From: Lepidodermella squamata | Taxonomy: Eukaryota; Animalia; Gastrotricha | NCBI GenBank assembly: GCA_047495785.1 | Contig: JBLDXI010000007.1 | Span: forward strand, 3,658,001-3,722,000 | Length of the DNA: 64,000 nucleotides | Direction: 5' to 3' | Shown here: positions 3,307 through 62,924 of the stretch, one piece after another | Numbering within the stretch: the first letter of the stretch is position 1 | Layout of the letters: every line of letters starts with the position of its first letter | The notes under the pieces: generated by a model | The model's input: the letters and a program-made list of their open reading frames with translations, nothing else | Database searches by the model: none | Told to the model about the DNA's origin: nothing | Position numbers and translations under genes: made by a program

Positions 3307-4388
3307 CTACGCTTCTTGAGTAATTTCAACAGCGCTATTCACATTTGGCAGTTCACTTGCGCTCATGTTAGGCGCGGTTAGTCCAAGACTCGCGTCATGT
3401 GTACCCTGCGAGACCGGCATGAACACAGCAGAGTTGGCGCCAGTGACTGTCGTAGTAATCGCCGTCGACCGCCGCCAAGTCCGCCGGCTGCTCTCCATCG
3501 GCGACGGAAGGGTCCAAGTTGGGACCTCAGGAGCAAACATGCTTTTGACAAAAGTATCGTCATGAATTGTCCGCCGTTGTTGCTCCTTCGGCCGTAAGAA
3601 ATCGCGACGAGGTTCGATGTCACCGCGTAGAATTCCGTTGCACAGCGCTGCTTTTTCATTGGCGTAGATGTTGCCGAGAACGTGGGCTGATTGAGTCGCG
3701 GTTAGACCCACCTGACCCAGGCCGATTCTTTGAGCCCTCCGACCGCAAATGTTGAGGTCGAAAACAGGGTCAGGCACTGGATGCCGCTGGCTTCGAGATT
3801 CGCGGCAATGAGATGAGTTGTCATTGCCCAGCAAACGTTGTCGGGGTAAAACTGCGGATGGGTGGCATAAAGTTGCCGAGGAAGGTGATAGCGCCCATGG
3901 AGATTTGTCTGGTAATTTGAAAGGCGGTGGTGGCTTACTGAAAGGAACAATAGAAACTTTGAAAGGAAGTATTTTCGAGCAATTGAACAAAGAATTTTGG
4001 AAAAGGTTTATCTCTAAGTTTATCCGCAAAAATACCAGTCCGAAAAATGGGCTCTCGAATTCTCGCACCGGTCAAACTGTGGATTTTTGTGTGTGGAAAT
4101 AGTAGAAGCTTATTTGGGGAATTGAGAGTCAAAAGGGTTGTTTAAAGAGTGTTTGCGGGGAGTTCACAGAGAGACAATGGTGTTCTCTCAGAATTCCATA
4201 TGACTAACATCAAAACAAATTAAAAACCAACGGGCAAAACTGGTTTCGGAATTATTAAGCCTAAATTTCTCAATACTTCAAATTGAACAGGAATCGAAAG
4301 TGTTTAGGCTGAGAGCTAACCTTCTGAGGTAAACCGGCAAATGCTTGGACTGCCCAAGTTCGGTGAGATCCATCACCTGCAGCGGCAT
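3307..4388 (-). CDS. Two-exon gene, uncharacterised protein of about 232 aa
   Basis: Exon 1 4388-4321 (MPLQVMDLTELGQSKHLPVYLR, donor AG|GTTAG, phase 2) joins the acceptor TTTCAG at 3937 in frame with the 3307-4068 ORF. No family recognised. Confidence 0.6.
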
Positions 4389-5217
4389 CTTCCTAGTTTT
4401 CTTCGATTTTGTATTGATAACGATATCGAAACTAAGAGTTAGTTCGTGTGCCTTAATGCTAGCAAAATGCCCGTATTGCGAAGCTCACAGCATGGCCGCA
4501 CGTTTTAAGCGTCGCCTAGCAACGGCCTTGACACGCCGCGCTACCGCGACAAAAGCAATGCGGCGTGACCATTCATTCACTCGCCGCCTAACTAATAGCG
4601 CATTGCTCAATACTCACACCGGTCGTGCTCGGCTGCCAATAGCGTAGTAGTAGCATTAGTAGTATAGCTTGTTATGCTCAAAACTACACGCCGCATTGTA
4701 TTATACGTTTTTACTTGTGTTGAGTAATATATTTTCCTCTATTGTGACGAATTGAGCAGCAAAACAACATGCTTACAAGAATTTTAAGTAATATCGGAAG
4801 GCGTTAACTTGGCCAAAATGGGGAGACAAAAAACAAGGATACGTCTAGAAATGGGGCAAAAAACGGATTTTTGAAATGATTTCGATTATTTTCATAATTG
4901 TTCGTGCTGGCTCGATCTCCGACATGTTAACGAAAAGAAAAAAAATATATAAAATTGTAGCTTTATTTCATCGTAGGAATATAAAATAAAAGAAGCTGTA
5001 ACACAAATGCAATGCCGCGTGTATAAGTGGCACACAAATACCGGGCATATTAGAATTCATTCGAAGTGAAACCACCAGATACTTTCTCTCTCCATTATGC
5101 TGGGTTTTACCGAAAACCCTTTGAGGATCTCCGGCTTACGAAAAGATTGGCGCCTGAATCTCCAGATGCAGGCTGACTGAAAGACGTAGATCGCTCGTGC
5201 TGCAGTTCAAACCAGGG

Positions 5218-7071
5218 TTAGCGCGAGCTTGAATCGTTGTTATCACTGCTGCACGGCGAGCTCGGCAAGCAGTCTGATGATTGCACCTTGTTGCCTGCAG
5301 ACATTTTCAGAACATCGTCATACGACGGCGGTAGGCCTGTCATAGAATTTGTCTCAGGTTGTTCTGGTTCAGCTGGAGGCGTCGCGCCCGGAGGTGGGGG
5401 AGGGGGTAGCGGGGGTGGAGGATGCGACTGGTAAACTGTTGACACGTTACCAGGATTAGCAGATTGATACACGGTAACAAAGCTCTCTGAATCATCTTCA
5501 TGCTCGTCGACCGTTGTCAGCCTCAACTGCTGGCGTGATTCACTTTGCCGCATTGAGCGTAGGCTGGGAGGATTAGGAAGCGGGGTTGCTCGTACGGCAG
5601 ACGAGCTTGTTTGCCGGGAAGTCGACGGCACGTCCGCTATTGTGAAAACTACATTTGACGACCGAGTTGGCGGTGGATTAGCAGATCTGGGCTCGACAGC
5701 TGAAGCCCAACGTGCCGCCCGAGATGAAAGAAGCTGGTCAACAGGTGGCGCTGGCACCTCCTCAAAAACACTCCCTTCCACGGGAGATTTTCTCCGTGAC
5801 TTATGCCGGCTGACAAAGGTCGAATCTGGTGGTGGGGCTTTTCTATTAAAACGGCGACCAGTGCTAGGCCCAGGAACAGCAGGAATAATCTGGTCTTCAC
5901 TAGAGCTCGATCCGCGAAATTCTCCATCCGGACTTGGGCTCGGGGGCGGAGCTTCCTTATCCGACCTCAGTTTCATCCGTGACAGACGTCTCTTCAAAAA
6001 AATTGCGAATAACGCAATAAAAACGGCTAGGGTAAAAATTGTCCCAACAACAATGCCAGTGATCGTTAATGTATTCATTTGGTTCGAAGACGGGCGGGGA
6101 ACAGTTCCATTTTCCGCCGGACCTAAAATGTCCTCCAAAATTACGGGACCTCTCCTTGGCGTTGACGTAGTCGGAGATGTTGGGACAGACGTTGTAATTG
6201 TCGTAGTCGTGGTCGTAGTTGTTGTTGTTGATTGCGGTGTCGTAACTCGTTTTGTCGTCGAAGTTACAGGACTCCTTGAAGATTGATTAGGTGATGTCGT
6301 ATTTCGGCTAATCAAATCGTTCCAGAATGCTGGCAGCCTTTTCGGCTTCAACACGCCCACGCATTCGAAAACAAAGAAACGAGGACGTAGTTCCTCCTCA
6401 AAATACTCCGTGAAATTCGTGTACAAATAAATATCGCTCAGGCTGCTGAGGGTGCTTCGGAAAGCCTGAGCATCGAAGGGTAGATTATTGAAAAGGGCTG
6501 AAAAATCGGCGTGGACAATCTGCCGTTTTGCCCCTTGGGTAAAGTTCGTGTAAATTGGGAAGTAAGCCGAGTCGAAATCTGGTGGGCTGACTTTTAGTGG
6601 GTCAACTTCCGGTAGGTTAAGGTCGATACTTGACGGGTAAGCTCCACTCGAACCTAGCGTCATCATGGTTTTCAAAGGCAAGCAAGTTGCGTTCATGGAT
6701 GTAGCACTCGGGAAACAGCCGAGTTGAACAGTGCCTGCCAAACCTTGCCAGAAAGTTGGCTCGATGATGCGCAGTTGGATTGAAAAATTTCCGACTCGAC
6801 CTTCGTAAGGATTCTTTAATTGCTGGTCGAGTAGCAGCGAAACTCGCGGCTCCTCGGTAAAGGTGCATCTTTTAAAAGAATTATCGCTCGGCACTGAAAT
6901 TCCTAGGTAATAGGTCCATTTCGGCCCAGCTGAGTCCGGATCAAGAGTTGTTGCCTGGGTCGCATAAGAAGTTACGACTTGAAGCTGCTGGTCATTGTTA
7001 GCCGATGAAACAACGGCAACGACCCAGGTCAAATAAGCAAAAGGAGATCGGAAGCAGTTCAGTGGTAACAT
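5218..7071 (-). CDS. Single-exon type I membrane protein (617 aa) with Thr-rich stalk and Pro-rich PPxY tail
   Basis: Long ORF with N-terminal hydrophobic signal, Cys-containing ectodomain, poly-Thr stalk, TM segment ITGIVVGTIFTLAVFIALFAIFL followed by KRR, poly-Pro and LPPSYDDV. Confidence 0.8.
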   Translation of the reverse strand: MLPLNCFRSPFAYLTWVVAVVSSANNDQQLQVVTSYATQATTLDPDSAGPKWTYYLGISVPSDNSFKRCTFTEEPRVSLLLDQQLKNPYEGRVGNFSIQLRIIEPTFWQGLAGTVQLGCFPSATSMNATCLPLKTMMTLGSSGAYPSSIDLNLPEVDPLKVSPPDFDSAYFPIYTNFTQGAKRQIVHADFSALFNNLPFDAQAFRSTLSSLSDIYLYTNFTEYFEEELRPRFFVFECVGVLKPKRLPAFWNDLISRNTTSPNQSSRSPVTSTTKRVTTPQSTTTTTTTTTTITTSVPTSPTTSTPRRGPVILEDILGPAENGTVPRPSSNQMNTLTITGIVVGTIFTLAVFIALFAIFLKRRLSRMKLRSDKEAPPPSPSPDGEFRGSSSSEDQIIPAVPGPSTGRRFNRKAPPPDSTFVSRHKSRRKSPVEGSVFEEVPAPPVDQLLSSRAARWASAVEPRSANPPPTRSSNVVFTIADVPSTSRQTSSSAVRATPLPNPPSLRSMRQSESRQQLRLTTVDEHEDDSESFVTVYQSANPGNVSTVYQSHPPPPLPPPPPPGATPPAEPEQPETNSMTGLPPSYDDVLKMSAGNKVQSSDCLPSSPCSSDNNDSSSR

Positions 7072-16565: not shown

Positions 16566-19415
16566 TACTTTTTTCTACAAATTGGAGCAATAAAATAATG
16601 TTGACCTTGAAGTTTCAGTGCGCGGTAAAAATTCAAACGTGTCTATTTTCGCGTTGCCACAAGATCTCATCTGCCCAATGTATTTATTTGCTTCCTTGGG
16701 ATCCGTGGGCAGGCAGGCCACCAGAGCGGCATGACATCCCTCATCACGCAGAAGCTGGGAATGTGGCCTATGAGCACATAAGGCATAAGGCCATGCTATC
16801 TTCCCGTTAAAATTAAGTCATTTGAAGTTTCTATTTTCTTATATGCAGGCTCTCCGCCAGCCGCCTGTTGAACCTCATTCAAATTGACTTGGGATTTTGG
16901 GATGCTTGATACCGGAAAAATGTATCGCGATTCCTTCATTGAAACCTCCCACCATTCTGTTCATTAAATACTTATCTTCAACATTCTTATGGTTGCTTTG
17001 AAAACTTGAACAGTCGCAGCCGTCCGGCTTGATTGCATATAAACAGCTCTATTGATGACCATTATGCGTAATTTGACTTTTGCCCGGTCAGTTTGAAGGC
17101 TAATAGTGGTATTTTTCAAGTTTTCATTGGATTCTCCCGACTATATATGATTTCTCCGAATGGCATGGCTATGTAAGGTGTAAAGCATTAACATTTCGAC
17201 GAGTTTTACCGCCACACTCAGTGTCATGGTCGTCCATGAGCCACCGACTGTTGTGATATGGCTGGCCACCGTGCAACCTTAAGCTCCAGATGTGAGTACA
17301 TCCGTGCCGATGGCCCTGATTTTCAACCAAAAAAAATGGCTGTTGGATTGAACATCTTTTTATCGATTCGGTCCCCTAAAATCTTTGTGATTTTTCTGGA
17401 TTATTTCATTGACACTTGCCATTTGTATTTGAGATTCAAGGCTGAAGTGTGTTAGCTTGAATCATTTCCTCTCCGCTGTAACGCTTTTAGCTGAGAATCG
17501 GTGGCCAAAGCCGATAGATCATAATTAATACCTATCTCTAGCTGCATGATGAAGCAATGCGTTGCATAACGCGCATCAAGAGCTTTGAGAGTTTCTTAAT
17601 CGCGGCTCTAATGACTTCCGATTCATATCTCCTCGATAATTAGACGCATTTCGCGGCGCGTATCAATAGATATTGACACCATTAGCATCTGCTCACAATT
17701 TGCAGTCTGCATTTTTTCAACGCCAGCGTTACGTTTCGCGTAAACAATCACAGCTCATCTAGTGTTCACTCCGTTTTGTAACAATAATAGTGTATAATGA
17801 CGATTACAATAAAAGAGCACGAATAAGCGGCGATTTTAATCATTATCACAATCATCAACACACACGCGCATAGGCTAAACTTGGTTATTTTATGCTATAT
17901 CCCGTATAACCGAGGGTGGGCAGGCCGGCCGTTTTGCTGTTATAATGGGCCGTGGCCATTAAGCGAGTTATGTATAGAGGTAGTACCTAGTACTATATAT
18001 ATTTCCATGCGTATAAGGTGGCTGTTCATACTCGCCAGATTTTGCGGTAGAGACGGTAAACACGCACGCTGGATTTCACGCGCTCAGGGCCTGATGCTGC
18101 TCATCCGCATGCATGCAGGCCGTCATGTTCTGGACGGTGCGATAAGGAGGCGCATTTCAAGCCCGCGCTCGTTTGTTATTACGCGCGCCGGCCGGCCGGT
18201 TCTGCGCGCATACGCGAGCGCCTATTATCAAGCAGGCAAAAAAGAACGTACTGAGGCTGCCGCTGATTTCAGCAAGCAGCCGCGCCGAACGATCCAGCTT
18301 ATAACTAAACGAGGCAGAGGGATGTCTTAAGCGTGTATGGTTGTATTGCTGTTATTATTATTATTTTTAGCCCCGCATCTTCGAACCGGCCTGCCTGCCT
18401 ACCAACCTACCTGCTTACTTCGCTAGTAATAAAGCTACGTAGTATGTAGTAGTGAAGCCTTCGAACCTGTACCAATACCGGGTAGTATAATAGCCTTTTC
18501 TCTTTTCTACTTTTCTGCCTATTACTATTATACCTTCAAGCTATCTATCACTGCTCGCCGTGTTTTGAGGCTGGTGCCGATCAGCGCCACCCTCCTCCTC
18601 CTACTCCTACTCTTCGCTGGGAAAATATTTAGATTGCCTTTACTACAACCCGGCTTAGCTACGGCTGAATTTAAAACTGGGCCATTTCTCGCTTCAATAG
18701 TAAATTTGCCTACTATTTGTTTTTCGCTGATAGAATTCAGTGACAGATCGGTTGAAATAATTTTCGGCCGATTTTATTAATTGATTTAATTAATAACTCA
18801 TCCATCAAAATGCGTAGCAAAGATCATTCATATTCACTATAATTGGATGAGATTTACTTACTAGGAAGCAAATTTCGGAATAATCGATTTTCTGTAGCAG
18901 TTTCATGAAGCCTAGAAAATAAACCCGTTATTTCTTTCCCCAATTTTTATAATCGAATGGAATTTTTTTTAATTTTACCGTTTGCTATTTTCGACTTTGA
19001 TTCCTTGTAGGATATATATTGATTTACAATTTCCGCGAATTCGCCCTGTTAATTATTTGGGAATTATAGGGTTAATGAATTCAATAAACTTTTTCATTAA
19101 ATTTTATATACAAAGATTGACCTAGAAACAGACAAGTATGTTAATTTTGCGGGGAAATGTTAATATAATATTAAAAAATTTATGTGTCATTGACCTGATT
19201 TTTTTCAGTGAAATTTCAGGATTTTTATTGATTTATTGGTGGGATTTTTATCGACCACATTTTGAATTTTTATGATTTTTGCCTATTAATAGAATTTGTT
19301 AATTTTTGAAATTGAGGTGTTGTTGTTGAAGCGGCAACACGCTCAATTTAGCAAATAGCGGCCATTGACGCGCCGGCTCTATTAAACAAGCTGAGCCGCT
19401 GAAGTCGCAATAACA

Positions 19416-54000: not shown

Positions 54001-57000
54001 TAATGTTTCCGAATTTTAATGAATAATCGCCTGTCCTTTCAAAGCATGATACTGAGAAAGGCGCCCTTGTATGGATTTTTTTTTTGATGAATGTCAAAAA
54101 TCCTAGTTAACAGTCAACTTTTTGTGTCGAGCAAAGGTTCTCCGAAAGCTTCTGAATTAATTTGCGATTTTTTCGAATCTTTACAGAAAGAAACCGAAGT
54201 CGAAGTCATCGACCACATCAAGGTCCTGCTGGCCAAAGAAGACGAGGTGAGATTTTCTGCCTAATGACCTGAATCGATAAATTATATAAATTTCATTTTT
54301 TCGGAATTTTCCGATATTTGATTATTGATTTATCGATAATTTTTCGATTTCCCATGATCACATTTTTTATCTAATTTTTTTGCTTATTTCAGCCCACCGA
54401 TGACAGCCAGAAATGGCAGAAGATTCTGTACAAGAAAATCGGCGGTTCGTTAGGCGAGGACAACCCGGCGCTGGTCGCCAACAAGGACGCGCGGTACGCG
54501 TGGGGCGCCACTCGCGTCTGCTCCGTCGCCAAGGTCGTCTACGGCATGCACGTCGTCGACCACCCGCAGTTCTTCGCGAAAAACGTGTGGAAGAAGGTGA
54601 TTTCGGTACAGCGCCGTCGCGCCGTGATGGCCTGCTTTCGCATGGTGCCGCTCTATGTGCTACCGCGGCATAGAGCCATCAACCTCTTCCTAACGTGCTA
54701 CTCGACCATGTGGCTAGAAAACGAGCTCCTCGAGACGAACAAACTCATCGAATACCTCACCGGCGATACGGCGACCGGCGAGGACGAGGCAGCCGCGGCC
54801 GCTGCTGCTGCTGCGGCTGAGGCGGCCGGCGGCCCGAGCGCCCAGAGCTCGGCGCCCTCCGAGGCCCCGTCGGCTGCTCCGGCCGCTATTGAGGCGCCGC
54901 CGGGTGAAGGCGCGCCGAACCCGGACCAGGGTGCCGATGCCCCGGCCGAGGAAGAGGCTGAGAAGCCGGATTCGTTGAAGCAGCTGGTTGCAGCTTTCAG
55001 CCGCATTGCGACGGCCGAACGCTCCGATCCGTTGCCGCCGGATGATTTGTTCATGAAAATGGCGAAAATCATGTCGAAATCGTGCTCGGTCGGCGATGAA
55101 GGTGAACCTTTAGAACGAATTTAGAACGACTTGAAATAATTGATCAATCATCAATCAAAAAATTTGATCCACACAAAAAGAAATCTAAATTGATCAGAAC
55201 TGATTTTGATAACAATGGATCAAATTTAGATCAATCATGAGCTAAAGTATCAGAATGTTATCAATTTGATTCACTTTCGATTCGATTAAGCTGATGAAAT
55301 TCTACGGATAATTATTTGTGGATCAAAAAGTTGAATCATTGCAAAGTTTGGATCAATTGAATTTCTCGTTACATTCGGCCGTGTTACAACTTTGTTATTC
55401 GGGTAGGGGCAGAGTATGTATGGATCAATTTGGATTCAAATTTCATAAAGGCGACAAAAAATTGATTGAAAAAGAATTACGTGGAATGCATCCGATCAAA
55501 TCAGGAAAATGAGAAATCAATCGTTGATACGACTGTAATTTCAATCGCGTGAAATTCCAACGCTACTCTCCCAACGGAATTTCGGTCTACTTCTTAAATG
55601 AAATGAATTGCTCTCAGTTTCTCGAAATTCCTTCTGTTTTAAATGTTCATTAACTGTTGTTCCTGCTTTTGCAGGTGATGATGACGGACCGACAGATACG
55701 CTGGAAATGGACGCTGAAGAACAAGCTCGTCAGCTCGAAGAGGACGAACTCGCCAGGCAGAGGTTGTTGGCTGAACAGCGGCGGTTAGCCGAGCGCAGCG
55801 TCGCCGAAATGGTCATTCAGTTCATTGCGGCGTCGCGAGGCGAAATCGGCGACATGGTCATGACGGCTGTTGAACTGGGTATCGCACTGCTAACTGGAGG
55901 CAATGTCGATGTCCAACAACGCATGCTTCAGCATCTCAAGGTTTGAATTTGAAAAATCTCGAGTCTCGATTAAAAATGTTGAGCAATTTTAGAATTTTAG
56001 TTCTGCTGAATCATGAAATTAAGCTTGAATTTTTTATTAATTTTGAAATTTTAAATTTTAAAATTTTGATAAAATTTTAAATGTTTTATATTGAATTGTT
56101 TATTTCGATTTTTCTAGGATACGAAAAATGTCGATTTCTTCCAGTCGATTGCGACCATTCTCGAACGCTCGTCTGTCCTAGATTTGGACGCTTTCGAGCG
56201 TTGCAACAAGGCGCAGGCCCTGGGCATGTCGACCGAGTCGAACCCTGAATTGCAAAATCTGCACGATAAGGACTCGACTTGCCAGTTGTTCCGCTTCTTG
56301 CAGCTTCTCTGCGAGGGCCACAACAACGACAATCAGAACTACCTGCGATCTCAGACTGGGTCGAACGCCTCCGTCAACTTGATCATTTGCACTGTTGATT
56401 ACTTGCTGAGGCTTCAAGAGTCTATCATGGATTTCTATTGGTTCTATTCGAATAAGGAGAGCATCGAAGAATCAGGCCGTGATTGCTTCATGAAGGCTAT
56501 CGAAGTCGCTAGTCAGGTAAAATATTAAAAAATTTATAAGTTTTGAAATTAAATTTAAATTTTAAATTTTAAAAATATTGAAATTTGAATTTTTCATAAT
56601 TTTTGAGTTGAATAATTGAATGCTAATTTTAACAAATTTTAACAGGTTTTCAATACTCTGACGGAGTTTATTCAAGGCCCATGCGTTGGCAATCAGCTCG
56701 CTCTGGCTCATTCGCGTCTGTGGGACGCCGTGGGCGGTTTCTTCTACATTTTCGCTCACATGCAAGAGAAATTGTCGAAAGACCCTGAGCTTATCGACCT
56801 GCTGAAGGAATTTATGGGCCTGCAAAAGGACATGATGGTCCTGCTGCTGTCCATGCTTGAAGGCAACGTCGTCAACGGCGCGATTGGCAAGCAAATGGTA
56901 GACACTCTGGCTGAATCTTCGAGCAATGTCGAAGTAAAAAAACACGAAAAATTCGTTTTTCAATGATTAAAATAATTTCAATATTTTTCAGTTGATTTTG

Positions 57001-60000
57001 AAGTTTTTCGACATTTTCCTGAAAATGAAGGATCTTACCTCTTCTGAAGCTTTCATGGTACGTTTAGACCTAATTTTTTTCTGGGAAGTACCCGGGTCGG
57101 TTTTCGGGAATTTTTGGGACCCTGGGAACATTTTCTTCGATTTTATTGCGAAATTTCGTCGCAGATGTTCGCGAAACAAGGCGTGTCTTGTATGACGCGC
57201 GGTGAGTTGAAGCAGGCGCTGAAAGCTACTAAATATTATGAGAGGTAATAAAGAAAGATAATGACGAAAAATGTGGGAGCGGGCGGACTGATATTTTGGT
57301 TTCGACTAGTTGCTCGCGAGTGGTTCTTAGTTGGTTTTCTTCTGTGCTTGGATTGACGATGAACAAATATTCACAAGTTTTATCGGGCTATTTATTCGTA
57401 AAATTTTTCCTATTTCCGAATCGCACCGAAAAATTCGCCAAATTATACTGCTTGCTCGCCTTTAGTAGCATTATTTTTGTTTTTTATTTATTTTTATTTT
57501 GCTGATTTTCGCTTGATCGTTGTATTGTGTCTTGCCGCCTTGGTGTTGCTGCTGTATAGGAAATCGACGGTGATGGTAATGGGGTCGTATCGGGCAAAGA
57601 GTTCCGAACTGCTCTAGAAAATCAGAAAGTCTACACCAAGTGAGTAAAATCGAAGGCCTGCTTCTTAGCAGCTGGAAGGCTTTTGATGAAAAAAATACTG
57701 ATTGAAAGCTGAAAAGTATTAATATCAGCTTTCATCCACTCATTTTTAGCCCTAGCAGCCGCTGAATATAAAACCTGCTTATAATGAAAATTTACATCGA
57801 ATGAGGCAAAAAACCAGAAACTACTGATTTTATATATTTTCGACGTTTTTTGCCTCATCGTAAAATGGAGCTTCTATAAGCAAGGTTTCACGGCTTTTTT
57901 CGCTCCGACTAAACAATCTGCTTTACAATCGAAGAGATAGTTATAGGTTACACTAACCTTTTTTCTTGATATTTCTTTCAAATTAAAAAATGTAAACATT
58001 TTCTGTGACGAAGGGGAATTGAGAGTTTGGAGTTTGGATTGAAAATGAAATTTCATTAAATAAATTTGAAAAACTATAAATCCAAAAAGATTTGAGAGTA
58101 TCGGGCAACTCTCAACTCCCTGTGTCACAGTTTCTTCACTGATCTCTTAATTTACAAACATTCATGGCTAATTTTTAATGATCTGTAAACTAGCTAGGTA
58201 ATCTTTTCTGGAACAACAACCTTAATTAATGTATAAATTCATAAAATTCCGACACTTTTTCATTCGCATCATTATTTGAATTAGAATTAGTAGAAGATTT
58301 TGCTTTGTTACTGTCAATTTTCCAGCAATTTCTATCGCGGCATTTTATTTACTTTCAATTTTGTCTTTTTTCACTGAATCTTGACGCATGAATTATTCTT
58401 CAGTTTTAACCATTTAGTTATCGATTTTTTAGAATTTTCGATTTCATTTTCTGTTAATTATTTTATTTTGCCTATGTTAGTAGTGACCTGTAACTATCTC
58501 TTTAGCTGATTTTTTTGCGTGTTTTTCTAACTAACCCTAACGTGTGTGAGTGATCAGTCGTCCGCCCCAAATTTGCATGTTTCAGTCGTAGAAAAAATCC
58601 CCTATTAAAAACCTTTCTCAATTTTCCCAGGGAAGAAATCGATTACGTCATGCGGTGTGTCGACGTGAACCAGGACGGCAAGATCGATTTCATGGAATTT
58701 GTCGATCGATTCCACAACCCGTCGAAAGAAATCGGCTACAATTTAGCCGTTCTTCTCACAAATCTTCAAGAGCACATACCCAACGACGTCCGGCTGTCTC
58801 GCCTGTTGGAAAAGGCGAAATCGGTGCTGGAATATTTCCAGAAATACCTCGGCCGCATCGAAATCATGGGCTTGACCGGGCGCGTCGAGCGGGTTTACTT
58901 TGAAATTTCGCAGATCAACATCGAGCAGTGGGAGAAGCCGCAGATTCGCGAGTCGAAGCGGTCTTTCCTGCACTCGGCCGCGGGCGAGGACGGCGATAAG
59001 GAGAAGCTCGAGATTTTTGTCAATTTCTGCGAGGATACCATCTTTGAAATGCAACACGCCTCGTCGCTGTCCAGCGAGGAGCAACAGGGCCCGACGAAAG
59101 CGTCCAAGGACTCAGCGGACGAAGAGGAACAAGGTACGAATTAACGAAAAATTCTCAAAATTTCTGCGGAAAAACTGTTTACTTCTCGAAAAATTCTAAT
59201 TTTTAAGAAATTGAAAAAATTGAAAAATTGAAAATTTGAAAGTAATAAATGAAAAATTAAGCAAAATAATATAAAGTAAAAAATAATTGGTATAAATCCC
59301 GAGATATTTTAAAATTTCGATTTCAATTAAATTTGAAATTCCAATTTTTTTTTAATTTTCGGAAATTTTCTCAATTTTTATTCTGATTCGATTTCCCGAA
59401 ATTATTTTAAAGCCGGAAATTTCTTGAAGCCAGTGCGAAAGTTTGATGTTTTTAATTATTCGCTGAATTTGTTAATAAATTGCAATTTTTTGCTTTCCAA
59501 GGTGCTGAGAAGGATGTTTCACCGGCGCAAATGCTGCTCGGCGTTCTGCGCACGCTGTACGACTTCATCTGGCTGATAGTCGGCCTAATCATGGGCATTT
59601 TCTCGGTGCTGACGTGGCAGAATATCAAAACCGCCTATCTCACGCTCAGCTCCATGACCCCGGGTGACATGGCCCTGGCGGCCGGGCGCCTCCAACTGCG
59701 CCTTCTCATGGCCGGCCTAGGCTATATCGAACTAATAGCTAAAACTCTGGGCCTATTTATCCTAAATATGATGCGGGGCCCGGTGAAGGACGACGAGTCT
59801 ACAGTAGCGCCTGAATCGGTGGCGCCCAGCCCGACGATCCTGAGCAGGGTGCGCCTAGCCGGCCAGCCGTCACCCACGCAGCTGATCCGGCTCGATGACG
59901 ACGATTCGAACGGCGACGAGGAGGAACTGGCTGTTTTCGGCGTGAAAATGCGCAAACGCGATGACGGGTTTGTAGTCACCCCTGACGAGAACGCCCTGGA

Positions 60001-61911
60001 TCCGACGGCAGCGGTGACCGCAACACCCGCAGCACCCACTCCATCGGCTCCGAAGACTGATACAGTCTCGGGCATTTCAATCCCAGGCCCGGGCGGGTCG
60101 AAGTCACTGCCTCCGCCGCGTATTTTCAAGGACGCCCCGGATCCGGGTGTTTTCCAGCAGGCGGCTAAGCCTGAAGAGGCGGCAACCAAGGCGTCGTGCA
60201 AGAAGGGCTTCGACTATACGAAATTCATCGCTGGGATGTTGGCGCGTAACTTCTACAGGTTCAAATTCATCGCCTTGGCTTTGACTTTCTTGATCAACGT
60301 CATTCTGCTGTTCTCGAAGGTCAACCAACAGGTTCGTTTTTTTCGATTTTTCTTCTAATTTCATCTCAGAAATCGCCTGAAAATGTTGGAAAAATTCATT
60401 TTGAAATTGGATAATTTTTTTAGTATTTCTAGTTATGAGATTTTTATTAATTGAAATTATTAACAATTTGAAAAAATGAAAATTAAATTTAAGAAACTTC
60501 AGACACGTTCCAACTTTCAATTTTGAATTCTAAATTTAAATTCTAATTTTTTTAATGAATTTAAGTTTGAATTTCAAATTTTTTTAATTTTAATTGTAAA
60601 TAGCGATGTGAAATTTTGCCGTGAATTTTTCATTTAAATTGTCCAATATATGTTTTCAAAATTTATGATATTTTTATTAGGTGGTTGAAGAGCCAGAATC
60701 AGCCGGAGATGACGAAGCAGCCACTGAGGCAATTGCAGACACCATCGCCAACATCGCTAGCGAAATCGTCTCAGAAATTTCCAACGCCACCGAGTCATTA
60801 ACCGAGGGTGGCGAAGAAGGCGCCGGGGGCGAGGAGGGTGGCGAAGAGGCCGAACCCGAGGTCATTGAATGGGTCACCCTATCACCGGAAATGTCCTACC
60901 TCGAGACCACCCTGCGCCTGCTCGCCCTCCTCCACTCATGCGTAGCCTTCGCCCTTCTAGTCGGTTACTACTTTCTCAAAGTGCCCCTCGTCATTTTCAA
61001 ACGCGAAAAGGACGTAGCGAGGCGGTTGGAATTCGACGGTCTGTGGATCGCCGAACAGCCGGCCGATGACGATCTGAAGGGCCACTGGGACAAACTCGTC
61101 CTAGCCACGCCGTCGTACCCGAAAATCTACTGGGACAAATTTGTCAAGAAAAAGGTCATTGGCAAGTACGCGGAGCAGTTCGACCGCGCGCAAATCGTTG
61201 AACTGCTCGGCTACGACAAGGTCCAGCCCACCGGCCCGTCGTTCATCCCGTCATTTCTACGCTCGATCGACTGGCAGTACCTTGTCTGGAAATGGGGCGC
61301 GATTTTGACGGATCAGAGTTTCTTGTACATCCTGCTCTACTTCGTTCTGTCCGTTGTCGGAAATTTCAAATACTTCGCGTTCGCGTGCCATCTCGTCGAT
61401 ATTGCCGTGTCGATCAAAACCCTGCAGACCATTTTGTTGTCAGTCATGCAGAACGGCCGGCAGCTGATGCTGACAGCCATGCTGCTCGCCGTCGTCGTGT
61501 ACTTCTACACGGTGATTGCGTTCAACTTCTTCCGCCAGTTCTACATCATGGGCGAGGACGGCGAGGAGAAGGATGCGAAATGCCATGACATGTTGTCGTG
61601 CTACACCTTCCACTTGTACAAGGGTGTGCGCGCCGGTGGTGGTATCGGTGATGAAATCGAGTCGCCCGACGGCAGCCCGGTCATGGTCTATCGTATGATC
61701 TTCGACATGACCTTCTTCTTCTTCGTCATCGTCATCCTGCTCGCTATCATGCAAGGTTCGTTTTTTTACAAATTTCGGCAATTTATTTGACATTTTCTAG
61801 ATTATTTTAATATTTGATCCTAATTTGATTCGATTTGAGCTTTCAAGTTCATCTGATCTCAGTTAGATTCAGCCAATTTCTGGAGTTGATCTTTGATCAA
61901 GTCCTCTAAAT

Positions 61912-61959
<48 letters not shown>

Positions 61960-62924
61960 ATACTTGGTGATAAATTTGTGATAACATCTTTGAAAATGTG
62001 CGAACAATTCAGAATGCCAAATTTTGCAGCAAATTTATATATATTTCTAAAATTAAACTTTCCGGAACCTCCCTTTTCATGGTGGACCGATGAATTATTC
62101 AATTTACCGGAAGAAACCTGGAAAAAGCCGATGGCAATTGGTTTGATAATTTTCGGAATTTTACCCGGTGGTTTGATCTTGGTTTGATCTTTTAAAAAAA
62201 CTCCGTTTAATTTTGATTAAAAATTAGTAGATCATTTTCCTCCGATTCAAGGTTCCACATTGTGGACTAGTCCTCGTTTGATCTGACTTTGACCCTTCTT
62301 TGATCCTCCGAAGATCTCGATGTGATACCAATTTTATACGACTAAATACCAGAAATTCAAGGAGAATTCCGACAAAACATTGGAATTGAAACGTTGGGTT
62401 ACTTTGAAAATGTTAGGATTTGGGATTTTATTAATTTTTCTGAACATCCATTGGGATTTCTGAATTTTCCAATGTGATTGGAATTATTGTTAGTTAGTAT
62501 CAAATACGATACAGTATCAATTACTCCTGATTTGAGCTACAATTGACCTCTTTCTATTCCGCTTTCAGGTTTGATCATCGACGCCTTCGGTGAACTTCGT
62601 GATCAAATGGAGCAGGTGCGCGAGGACCTTGAGTCCAAATGCTTCATCTGCGGCATCGGCAAAGACTATTTCGATAGTGTCCCACACGGCTTTGAGGAGC
62701 ACACAACACGCGAGCACAACTTCGCGAACTACATGTTCTTCCTGATGCACCTCATCAACAAGGATGAGACCGAGTACACGGGCCAGGAGACGTACGTCTG
62801 GAACATGTACCAACAGCGCGTGTGGGACTTTTTCCCGGCTGGTGTCTGCTTCAGACAGCAGTACGAAGTCGAACTCGGCTACGGCGGCGGCGGGGGCGGT
62901 GGCGGTGGCGGTGGGGGCGATTGA
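19416..62924 (+). CDS. RyR: Ryanodine receptor (intracellular Ca2+-release channel), complete gene, about 5,312 aa
   Basis: Exons: 19416-19469, 19587-19790, 20184-20541, 21050-21735, 22378-22866, 23096-23575, 24043-24472, 24544-25106, 25164-25430, 25646-26013, 26100-26423, 26922-27311 (optional), 27980-28066, 28810-29440, 29920-30106, 32460-33034, 41769-42740, 43645-44478, 45875-46301, 46719-47266, 47871-48032, 48437-48568, 48623-49096, 49368-49883, 50550-51698, 54187-54246, 54393-55101, 55675-55940, 56118-56516, 56646-56933, 56992-57057, [57165-57244 or 57560-57639], 58631-59133, 59502-60331, 60681-61755, 62569-62924. Sum 15,939 nt, in frame. Hallmarks: N-terminal SFLRT and [31 protein letters not shown] domains, RyR repeats, CaM site [27 protein letters not shown] and TEFIQGPC Ca2+-site residues, EF-hands, pore [25 protein letters not shown]-terminal CFIC/H/H zinc site. 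Confidence 0.97.
26588..26797. mobile_element. MITE-like inverted repeat in RyR intron 11
   Basis: AGCAGAAAAGAATGAAGCAAATTTC at the left end matches the reverse complement of GAAATTTGCTTCATTCTTATTCTGCT at the right end. Confidence 0.5.
26922..27311 (+). CDS. RyR: Candidate optional RyR exon in divergent region 2 (390 nt, phase 2-2)
   Basis: Pyrimidine-rich acceptor ...GAGTAG|, GC-rich coding-like Ser/Pro/Arg-rich frame, weak donor AG|GTCCCG; symmetric and skippable. Confidence 0.6.
30451..31437 (+). CDS. Intronless TMEM268-like membrane protein nested in RyR intron 15 (same strand)
   Basis: 328-aa ORF with two adjacent TM segments. Motif order matches my recollection of TMEM268: YRRTVGDAL (YRSLAESAL), [17 protein letters not shown] (VIQLWFVYFDLENCVQFL), C-terminal [12 protein letters not shown] (RH..PCPCQL). 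RyR exons 15 and 16 join without it. Confidence 0.7.
   Translation: MFALSNYTHAESRDSSRRSSQERRRATVMAGVRWINQPLTGSTAHLPGPLPSDLFHVVALARFEMCGLFEPEIHVVGRTQFNKHLASPAYRRTVGDALTELLERAHLNASWHFTLQPLFTLIALCFTLSGIFGVLMIGGFRSKVAIVSLALILPATAFFSTMYLLRLRNAALIRATNYLSQWALVHNARNLVSPKELFITLGNDRFATITIQFYALATHACIPPLAALSVRLAGKPRLKIFLARTLEQLCGSSSIWFALLMQELPYWRIVTATLVTLWLAAFDERLVTAEYRHVYDKLCLCQLGARVEKMVANPSTLCSPRSIITQPT
33052..33084. repeat. (ATT)11 microsatellite
   Basis: Perfect trinucleotide run just after the RyR exon 16 donor. Confidence 0.9.
33693..35629 (-). CDS. Nested antisense gene (about 457 aa): unknown N-terminal domain, degenerate P-loop (AIG1/GIMAP-like) domain and CaaX box
   Basis: Exons (minus): 35629-35156, 35107-34985, 34866-34859 (8 nt), 34803-34774 (30 nt), 34481-34369, 34318-33693. 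All GT-AG, sum 1374 nt, in frame. Motifs [14 protein letters not shown] (G1 position), LIIDGP (G3), [15 protein letters not shown]; ends CKLL. Confidence 0.72.
34526..34754. mobile_element. hAT-type MITE in an intron of the nested gene
   Basis: 14-bp TIR CAGGCCTAGCCAAC / GTTGACTAGGCCTG (1 mismatch) flanked by an 8-bp target duplication TATTATAA / TATTAGAA. Confidence 0.75.
35914..35949 (-). ncRNA. Degenerate minimal type I hammerhead ribozyme motif (Penelope-like element type)
   Basis: Minus strand reads CC-CUGAAGA-U-GGC-ccaauaaa-GCC-GAAAC-AU-GUC-GG: both core boxes, a 3-bp stem II, palindromic ACAUGU stem III and a GUC site. Stem I is only about 2 bp. Confidence 0.45.
36313..36472. mobile_element. 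Possible pogo/Tigger-like MITE remnant
   Basis: TA-CAGTG... start, repeated AAACCGGAC / GTCCGGTTT motifs, ...TCAACTG end; TIRs degenerate. Confidence 0.3.
37320..39330. mobile_element. About 2-kb element with long inverted subterminal repeat arrays (non-autonomous DNA transposon)
   Basis: TATTTACACCCACCTGCTGGGTCGCGTTAACTTGCAATTTACACCCACC (about 37357-37405) is mirrored by GGTGGGTGTAAATAGCAAGTTAACGCGACCCAGCAGGTGGGTGCAAATA (about 39192-39240), with tandem GGGTGTAAATAG units. Exact ends are uncertain. Confidence 0.6.
38146..38268. mobile_element. 123-bp MITE
   Basis: 27-bp TIR CAGGGTGGCCACAAAATGCCGCAGAGG with one mismatch to the reverse complement of the right end; no clear TSD. Confidence 0.7.
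39782..40512 (-). CDS. Second, 5'-truncated paralogue of the nested pseudo-GTPase/CaaX gene (about 223 aa)
   Basis: Exons 40512-40449 and 40389-39782 (672 nt, in frame): [29 protein letters not shown]...LIDGP...HDVVLFT...LTNTVLIVT...SSCKLL. Clearly homologous to 33693-34481, with the same intron position. Confidence 0.65.
40668..40963. mobile_element. piggyBac-like MITE (TTAA target duplication)
   Basis: TTAA-CACTTTACCAGCCAAAAATTGACTGCGAGAT ... ATCTCGCAGTCTATTTTTGCAGTTAAAGTG-TTAA; about 50-bp imperfect TIRs. Confidence 0.7.
53033..53062 (+). CDS. RyR: Candidate 30-nt cassette microexon of RyR ([10 protein letters not shown])
   Basis: TTCTAG| acceptor after a long pyrimidine tract, donor TG|GTAAGG, phase 0-0 matching the host intron, no stop. 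Confidence 0.5.
57165..57244 (+). CDS. RyR: RyR mutually exclusive exon 32A, degenerate EF-hand 1
   Basis: CGCAG| ... AG|GTAATA, 80 nt, phase 0-2; encodes [26 protein letters not shown](R). Confidence 0.8.
57261..58589 (+). promoter_or_regulatory. Predicted long-range intronic RNA duplex (splicing switch): 57261-57292 paired with 58553-58589
   Basis: GGGAGCGGGCGGACUGAU pairs with AUCAGUCGUCCGCCCC (16 bp, two bulges), extended by AUGACGAAAAAUGU pairing with GCAUGUUUCAGUCGU. Both arms are GC-rich islands in AT-rich introns and bracket exon 32B. Confidence 0.65.
57560..57639 (+). CDS. RyR: RyR mutually exclusive exon 32B, canonical EF-hand 1
   Basis: TATAG| ... AA|GTGAGT, 80 nt, phase 0-2; encodes [26 protein letters not shown](K). 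Confidence 0.9.
61915..61956. repeat. (CT)21 microsatellite
   Basis: Perfect dinucleotide run in the last RyR intron. Confidence 0.95.

Follow-up and report, generated by a model that had tools for sequence, protein, structure and literature searches.

We describe a pair of 80-nt exons of the gene for the ryanodine receptor (RyR) in the gastrotrich Lepidodermella squamata, which lie between two constitutive exons and carry two versions of the first EF-hand (EF1) of the channel. On balance we favour the view that the two, named 32A and 32B, are tandem-duplicated alternative coding exons of a single-copy RyR gene, one being used per mRNA and the A form being without ion sensing at EF1. Mutually exclusive use, expression of 32A and any functional effect are all things that we infer from exon anatomy and comparison, and on the same sequence grounds the "dead" 32A version is probably a real isoform. 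The gene lies in a stretch of 64,000 nt, referred to as the window (positions 3,658,001 to 3,722,000 of the forward strand of contig JBLDXI010000007.1, assembly GCA_047495785.1), which covers most of it; it is on the plus strand at about 19.5-63 kb of the window, and all window features given below are on that strand. The exon numbers 31, 32 and 33 are labels from a first, sequence-only reading of the window and not an independent count.

The identity of the gene as that of a ryanodine receptor is given by Pfam matches on its long exons to RYDR_Jsol (1.5e-45), RR_TM4-6 and Ion_trans, by E values of about 1e-115 against the solved RyR1, RyR2 and RyR3 chains, and by the pore motif GxRxGGGxGD. 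Paired EF-hands are present between the central domain and the transmembrane region. A second RyR copy was sought across the 121-Mb genome and none was found; the gene is single copy and therefore isoform diversity must arise through splicing.

Anatomy and common origin of the two exons

The upstream constitutive exon 31 (56992..57057, ending ATG/gtacgt) encodes the entering E helix of EF-hand 1, and the Glu of its SSEAF motif aligns with E4075 of rabbit RyR1. The downstream constitutive exon 33 (58631..59133, acceptor ttcccag/G) contains the EF-hand 2 loop (58662-58697), which reaches the Pfam EF-hand_1 threshold. The two lie 1.57 kb apart and both 80-nt segments are inside that interval. Exon 32A (57165..57244, tcgtcgcag/ATG...GAG/gtaata) has a ligand-poor EF1 loop of 12 residues (57171-57206), followed by the exit helix with a Lys aligned with RyR1 K4101 (57231-57233). 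After an intron of 315 nt with 37% G+C (57245..57559) comes exon 32B (57560..57639, ctgtatag/GAA...CAA/gtgagt), with a canonical EF1 loop, also of 12 residues (57566-57601), and its own Lys aligned with K4101 (57626-57628). Both exons have AG/GT splice sites and begin in phase 0; the last two bases of each open a codon that is finished by the first base of exon 33, giving R after 32A and K after 32B. They stand out as islands of G+C, with 47.5% and 46.3% respectively as against 32-43% for the surrounding introns.

This arrangement has consequences for the reading frame. Inclusion of both exons leads to a stop inside 32B, and skipping of both to a frameshift with a stop after 90 shifted codons. 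The sequence-only reading had proposed that the two exons share length and phase and that including both, or neither, breaks the frame; its coordinates and peptides agree with ours, and the stops bear out the second statement. Under the mechanism that we propose each mRNA would carry exactly one of 32A and 32B, and mRNAs with both or neither, having a frameshift and premature stop, would not yield a full-length channel and are likely to be degraded.

As to how joint inclusion might be prevented, steric exclusion is ruled out by the A-B intron, which at 315 nt is too long, and U12-type or spliceosome incompatibility is ruled out as all sites are GT-AG. Intron-intron RNA pairing was also looked for, and the inverted repeats are short and AT-rich with coarse duplex energies no better than those of shuffles; this is lack of support and not refutation of a long-range duplex, the method being coarse. 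There is a 20-nt inverted repeat in the intron after 32B (57932-57951 and 58483-58502, 90% complementary, 531 nt apart), which brackets neither alternative exon and may mark the termini of a small inserted element.

Splice sites and an open frame alone are weak evidence for an exon in this interval, as there are 11 frame-keeping AG..GT candidates in the 1.57 kb, one of them other than our pair also of 80 nt, and it might be argued from this that 32A is a chance open frame between chance splice-like dinucleotides. However the ungapped BLOSUM62 score of A against B is 18, with a shuffle p of 2.6e-4, and in similarity to B the A exon takes 6th place among all 38,545 27-mers free of stops on the two strands of the window. 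By these comparisons the A-B similarity is not chance. With significant similarity of 32A both to 32B and to an A exon that has the same place and phase in a second species, we find a chance origin hardly credible. The proposal that 32A and 32B are homologous tandem duplicates, of which only one can be used at a time if the frame is to be kept, is supported by the shuffle p, the rank and the stops together.

The second species was found by a protein search with exon 33 over 1.8 billion protein representatives. The clearly closest match was protein P0001 (82%), from an ENA metagenome contig of 9.5 kb with a compact RyR gene, referred to here as L001. The four exons are present in L001 in the same order as in the window: exon 31 ends at 4839 (CAG/gtatgc), an A-type exon of 77 nt is at 4943-5019 (aatcag/ATG...CTG/gtaact, reading MFTNDLTKMTLKELRLGLRATKFYT(C)), the B-type exon of 80 nt is at 5201-5280 (split codon T) and exon 33 starts at 5491. 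The lengths of the alternative exons, 80 and 80 nt in the window and 77 and 80 nt in L001, are all 2 mod 3. The A exons of the two species are identical at 11 of 26 residues (42%), with a length difference of exactly one codon and the same phase, and the B exons at 24 of 27.

The two species are deeply diverged. In A, B and exon 33 alike the synonymous sites have reached saturation, for which reason dN/dS cannot be computed, and dN is 0.53 for A and 0.13 for both B and exon 33. At the DNA level only exon 31 and 32B can be aligned; the introns do not align, that between 32A and 32B included, and the only 8-mer of the A exon common to the two is CAGATGTT. The A-B score within L001 is 25, and the A-A global score between window and L001 is 43, neither being reached in any of 20,000 shuffles, with all A-B scores lower than the latter (16 to 25). 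As the two A exons are closer to each other than either is to B, the duplication predates the split of the two species. Frame, splice sites, phase and 42% identity have survived saturating divergence, which argues that A has been kept as coding sequence under selection, which by the substitution pattern is looser than that on B. The presence of an open, spliceable exon of the same phase in a second, deeply diverged species argues that 32A is not a decayed relic. The sequence-only reading had made conservation in relatives a check on 32A, and the orthologous exon in L001 is what it had called for.

There is also some information on variation between strains. In a DNA run from another strain or haplotype (X2) exon 32A has a single change, synonymous (57179 A>G, CAA to CAG), and the 32A-32B intron has three indels of 3, 7 and 1 nt, a difference that agrees, weakly, with constraint on A.

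The ATG with which 32A begins does raise the question of whether this could be an alternative first coding exon, reached from an internal promoter or by spliced-leader trans-splicing and translated from its own ATG. Translation would then yield a RyR truncated at its N terminus, about 900 residues long and comprising the dead EF1, EF2 and the channel domain. Truncated C-terminal RyR transcripts are known from vertebrate brain, and in both species the ATG follows directly on the acceptor AG, CAG/ATG being conserved. However 32A shares phase and length class with 32B and joins exon 31 in frame, none of which is required of a first exon, the A-B homology spans the entire exon, and the Met may simply fill position 4079 (RyR1 numbering), which is variable and is E, A or D in B-type exons. 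We think such a first exon unlikely, and prefer 32A as the internal alternative to 32B.

Two further features of the gene may be recorded. The C-terminal 739 residues, which run from EF2 almost to the end of the channel domain, are in a single exon in L001 (5510-7729) and are interrupted by at least 3 introns in the window (58631-62921), so that intron content differs strongly between the species. There is a CT-rich simple repeat at 61906-61965, in the intron before the last coding exons, one frame of which reads LSLSLS.

EF-hand loops and the contact with the S2-S3 loop

To judge the loops we used the PROSITE PS00018 pattern, a loop of 12 residues in which 1, 3, 5 and 12 carry oxygen ligands and 6 is Gly. 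The 32B loop and the constitutive EF2 loop both match it; 32A, whose residues at 1, 3, 5 and 6 are A, Q, V and S, fails it. The sequence-only reading had given 32B a full EF loop, EF2 a canonical loop common to all forms and 32A a loop that has lost its ligands, and in each case we came to the same result, EF2 passing the Pfam cut-off as well; by sequence comparison the 32A loop lacks the side-chain ligands at 1, 3 and 5 and the Gly at 6.

What 32A retains is also informative. It has kept loop positions 8, 9, 12 and 13, the hydrophobic residues of the exit helix and the K-x-Y motif, and what the two A exons have in common is M, T, E and L at those four positions, a Leu of the helix, A-T-K and a Tyr. 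Judged from sequence, then, the positions common to the A exons are those that build the EF fold and exit helix and not the ion ligands. It had been suggested that the fold is retained while the ligands are lost, and the conserved residues of the A exons, being fold positions, are consistent with this; the A-type loop of L001 is, in addition, one residue short.

The swapped segment can be placed on the known structure. Exons 31, 32B and 33 align without gaps with RyR1 4055-4165 (via vertebrate fragment P0028 and the strings upstream of it), and the segment encoded by 32A or 32B corresponds to rabbit RyR1 residues 4079-4105, that is the EF1 loop (4081-4092) and then the exit helix. The E4075 equivalent sits in exon 31 and is common to both forms, as is EF-hand 2. 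The K4101 equivalent, found within NQK in B and within ATK in A, is a Lys kept in all four exons of the two species.

In RyR1, K4101 pairs with D4730, and E4075, Q4078 and D4079 pair with R4736, both partners being in the S2-S3 loop of the neighbouring subunit, and the mutations K4101E and K4101M lower the affinity for Ca2+/Mg2+ inhibition (PMC10832476). Charge scrambling of the EF1 loop lowers sensitivity to Ca2+ inactivation (PMC11096358). By alignment to the solved RyR chains the residue of the window gene at D4730 in the S2-S3 cytoplasmic loop is Glu (61173..61175), and that at the disease position R4736 in the same loop is Gln (61191-61193). The D4730 equivalent being acidic and the R4736 equivalent being Gln, the Lys contact is plausible and the second contact less so, and of the two published salt bridges between EF-hand and S2-S3 loop only one looks conserved in the sequence.

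Putting these together, the B form would have a complete Ca2+/Mg2+-coordinating loop and would sense divalent ions at EF1. The A form, with the EF fold residues and the Lys that contacts S2-S3 both kept, would have an EF-hand domain that docks as in B while divalent sensing at EF1 is lost, and an A channel would be expected to have weaker or right-shifted Ca2+/Mg2+-dependent inactivation. It is possible, and we put it forward tentatively, that the pair is a natural on/off switch of the RyR sensor for inhibition by divalent ions, with the S2-S3 contact kept, mixed tetramers possible, and selection for it in two species.

Distribution, and points against a coding A isoform

Exon 31 is conserved in L001, in two further loci (L003 and L040) and in about 30 others, and in several of the other genomic contigs exon 31 and the EF1 segment are not separated by an intron. 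In those relatives an A-type exon is impossible, as the intron before EF1 is missing. L003 is NCBI GCA_002269645.1, presumably a macrostomid flatworm. In the intron before its EF1 exon (17845-18277) there is a short tandem repeat resembling CAATCAATCAG, in which the candidate frames are all SINQ/PTNQ. The RyR fragments nearest to the window gene are from molluscs, flatworms, arthropods and rotifers, all about equally distant. Our protein survey took in 150 representatives and sets of 120 each of short fragments, full-length insect isoforms and mid-length fragments. From the loci and proteins together we conclude that the 32A/32B pair is lineage-restricted; for insects in particular the absence of an A-type EF1 is not proven by the matches listed.

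A number of observations weigh against an expressed and functionally distinct A form. An A-type exon was found in L001 only among 44 related loci, and thus in a single other species; L003 and L040 share the 80-nt B exon and the intron positions, but an A-like open frame is absent from both. Contigs that look like transcripts, with exon 31, EF1 and exon 33 joined up, are all B-type, none being of this lineage, and among the matches listed none of the 264 RyR proteins with an EF1 region has an A-type EF1, again with none from this lineage. RNA runs were sought for 8.5 kb and 3 kb around the exons, and none matched. One run (X1), which is only guessed to be RNA, has zero depth over 56640-57639, that is over exons 31, 32A and 32B. 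At non-synonymous sites A has evolved about 4 times faster than B. The 32A acceptor has a poor pyrimidine tract and is weaker than the adjacent acceptors. Finally the vertebrate RyR1 EF1 loop (VTDPRGLISKKD) and the insect EF1 loops fail the strict consensus, and there is Gln at the position of R4736; with EF1 non-canonical in RyR1 and insects, and the contribution of EF-hands to RyR gating debated, the functional effect of the exchange could be small.

With regard to run X1, it covers some 3' exons and part of the intron that follows 32B (57640-58440, 60840-61840) at low depth, and its joints are nearly all strand switches about 100 nt apart, which look like an assembly or library artefact.

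The non-canonical EF1 loops of other animals merit a further comment. Judged by the strict PROSITE pattern, the 32B loop is nearer to canonical than is EF1 in insect RyRs, where loop position 9 is Leu or Tyr, or in vertebrate RyR1 and RyR2, where ligand positions hold Val/Arg or Lys. RyRs thus tolerate variation in EF1, and the exchange of a canonical for a ligand-poor loop, while standing as an observation, is less exotic than the sequence-only reading had implied. In some lineages the EF1 loop is constitutively degenerate, examples being DKKGTGWVTAKD and DKRGIGWVTATD.

Several of the points listed above would also suit 32A as a vestigial or purely regulatory duplicate, rarely included, or acting with 32B as a poison exon, and giving no stable A protein. 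This explanation draws on the premature stop that follows when A and B are used together, on the weaker A acceptor, on the high dN of A and on the lack of any A-type sequence among the transcript-like contigs or, among the matches listed, the 264 proteins. However an exon of that kind needs neither an open frame nor the residues of the EF fold, and A retains the open frame, a length change of 3 nt that keeps it, loop positions 8, 9, 12 and 13, the exit helix and the K4101 position. We therefore regard a non-coding or vestigial role as improbable, and return to 32A and 32B as alternative coding exons. For exons used in this way the weaker acceptor of the upstream member makes it suited to regulated inclusion, as in CaV2 exon 37a.

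Comparison with known systems, and significance

As a principle, the switching of an EF-hand between Ca2+-binding and non-binding forms through mutually exclusive exons has precedents in alpha-actinin and CaV2. In ACTN1 and ACTN4 mutually exclusive EF-hand exons give Ca2+-sensitive and Ca2+-insensitive isoforms (PMC9741552). As in the RyR pair, the first EF-hand is in part replaced through tandem-duplicated exons, and only one version keeps the Ca2+-binding residues. However alpha-actinin is an actin cross-linker and not a channel, and its isoforms have been shown experimentally, while those of RyR are predicted from sequence.

The CaV2.1, CaV2.2 and CaV2.3 exons 37a and 37b (EFa and EFb) are mutually exclusive, have the same length and alter Ca2+-dependent feedback (PMC7235277). 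The anatomy is that of 32A and 32B, with the E helix kept and the loop, F helix and following residues swapped. The CaV2 channels differ in being voltage-gated channels of the plasma membrane, in which the EF-hand-like domain relays calmodulin regulation and does not itself bind Ca2+. They differ too in that the pair is ancient and widespread, whereas the RyR pair was found in two species only.

Within the RyR family, splicing in invertebrates is known for the insect SPRY2 exons a/b, fly exons 10/11 and 22/23, and the DR2 and first exons of C. elegans unc-68. These resemble the present case in being alternative or mutually exclusive exons of single-copy invertebrate genes, with stage and tissue specificity, but their sites are in SPRY2 (about 1135-1165), in DR2 or at the 5' end, the position of fly 22/23 not having been located. 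A survey of tandem exon duplication lists RYR3, Ryr and unc-68 with the site not given, and an insect RyR review of 2021 makes no mention of an EF-hand splicing event. In the literature on RyR splicing we found no alternative exon described in the EF-hand domain, with fly exons 22/23 unplaced, and subject to the same proviso this agrees with the impression from the sequence-only reading that the switch had not been described before.

The closest functional parallel is in engineered RyR1 mutants, in which the same segment (4081-4092 and 4101) has been altered and inhibition by Ca2+/Mg2+ is reduced, which is the phenotype predicted for A (PMC11096358, PMC10832476). Those are laboratory changes in a mammalian paralogue; the RyR pair is natural, would be selectable by splicing, and keeps K4101.

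We conclude that the EF1 exon pair is a credible, conserved and apparently undescribed site of RyR isoform diversity. It has so far been seen in two invertebrate genomes, with 32A and 32B known from their sequence. The role of the RyR EF-hand pair as a low-affinity sensor for inhibition by Ca2+ and Mg2+ is still argued from mutants and cryo-EM, and if our interpretation is correct, natural isoforms differing only in 4079-4105 would be a ready-made test of that sensor, having the same interface Lys with or without the EF1 ligands. RyR would also join alpha-actinin and CaV2 as an independent case of EF-hand exon swapping, which would suggest that calcium feedback has been tuned in this way recurrently. 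In the animals concerned, cells could by choice of exon set the level of Ca2+-dependent inactivation of their RyR channels, including by way of mixed tetramers.

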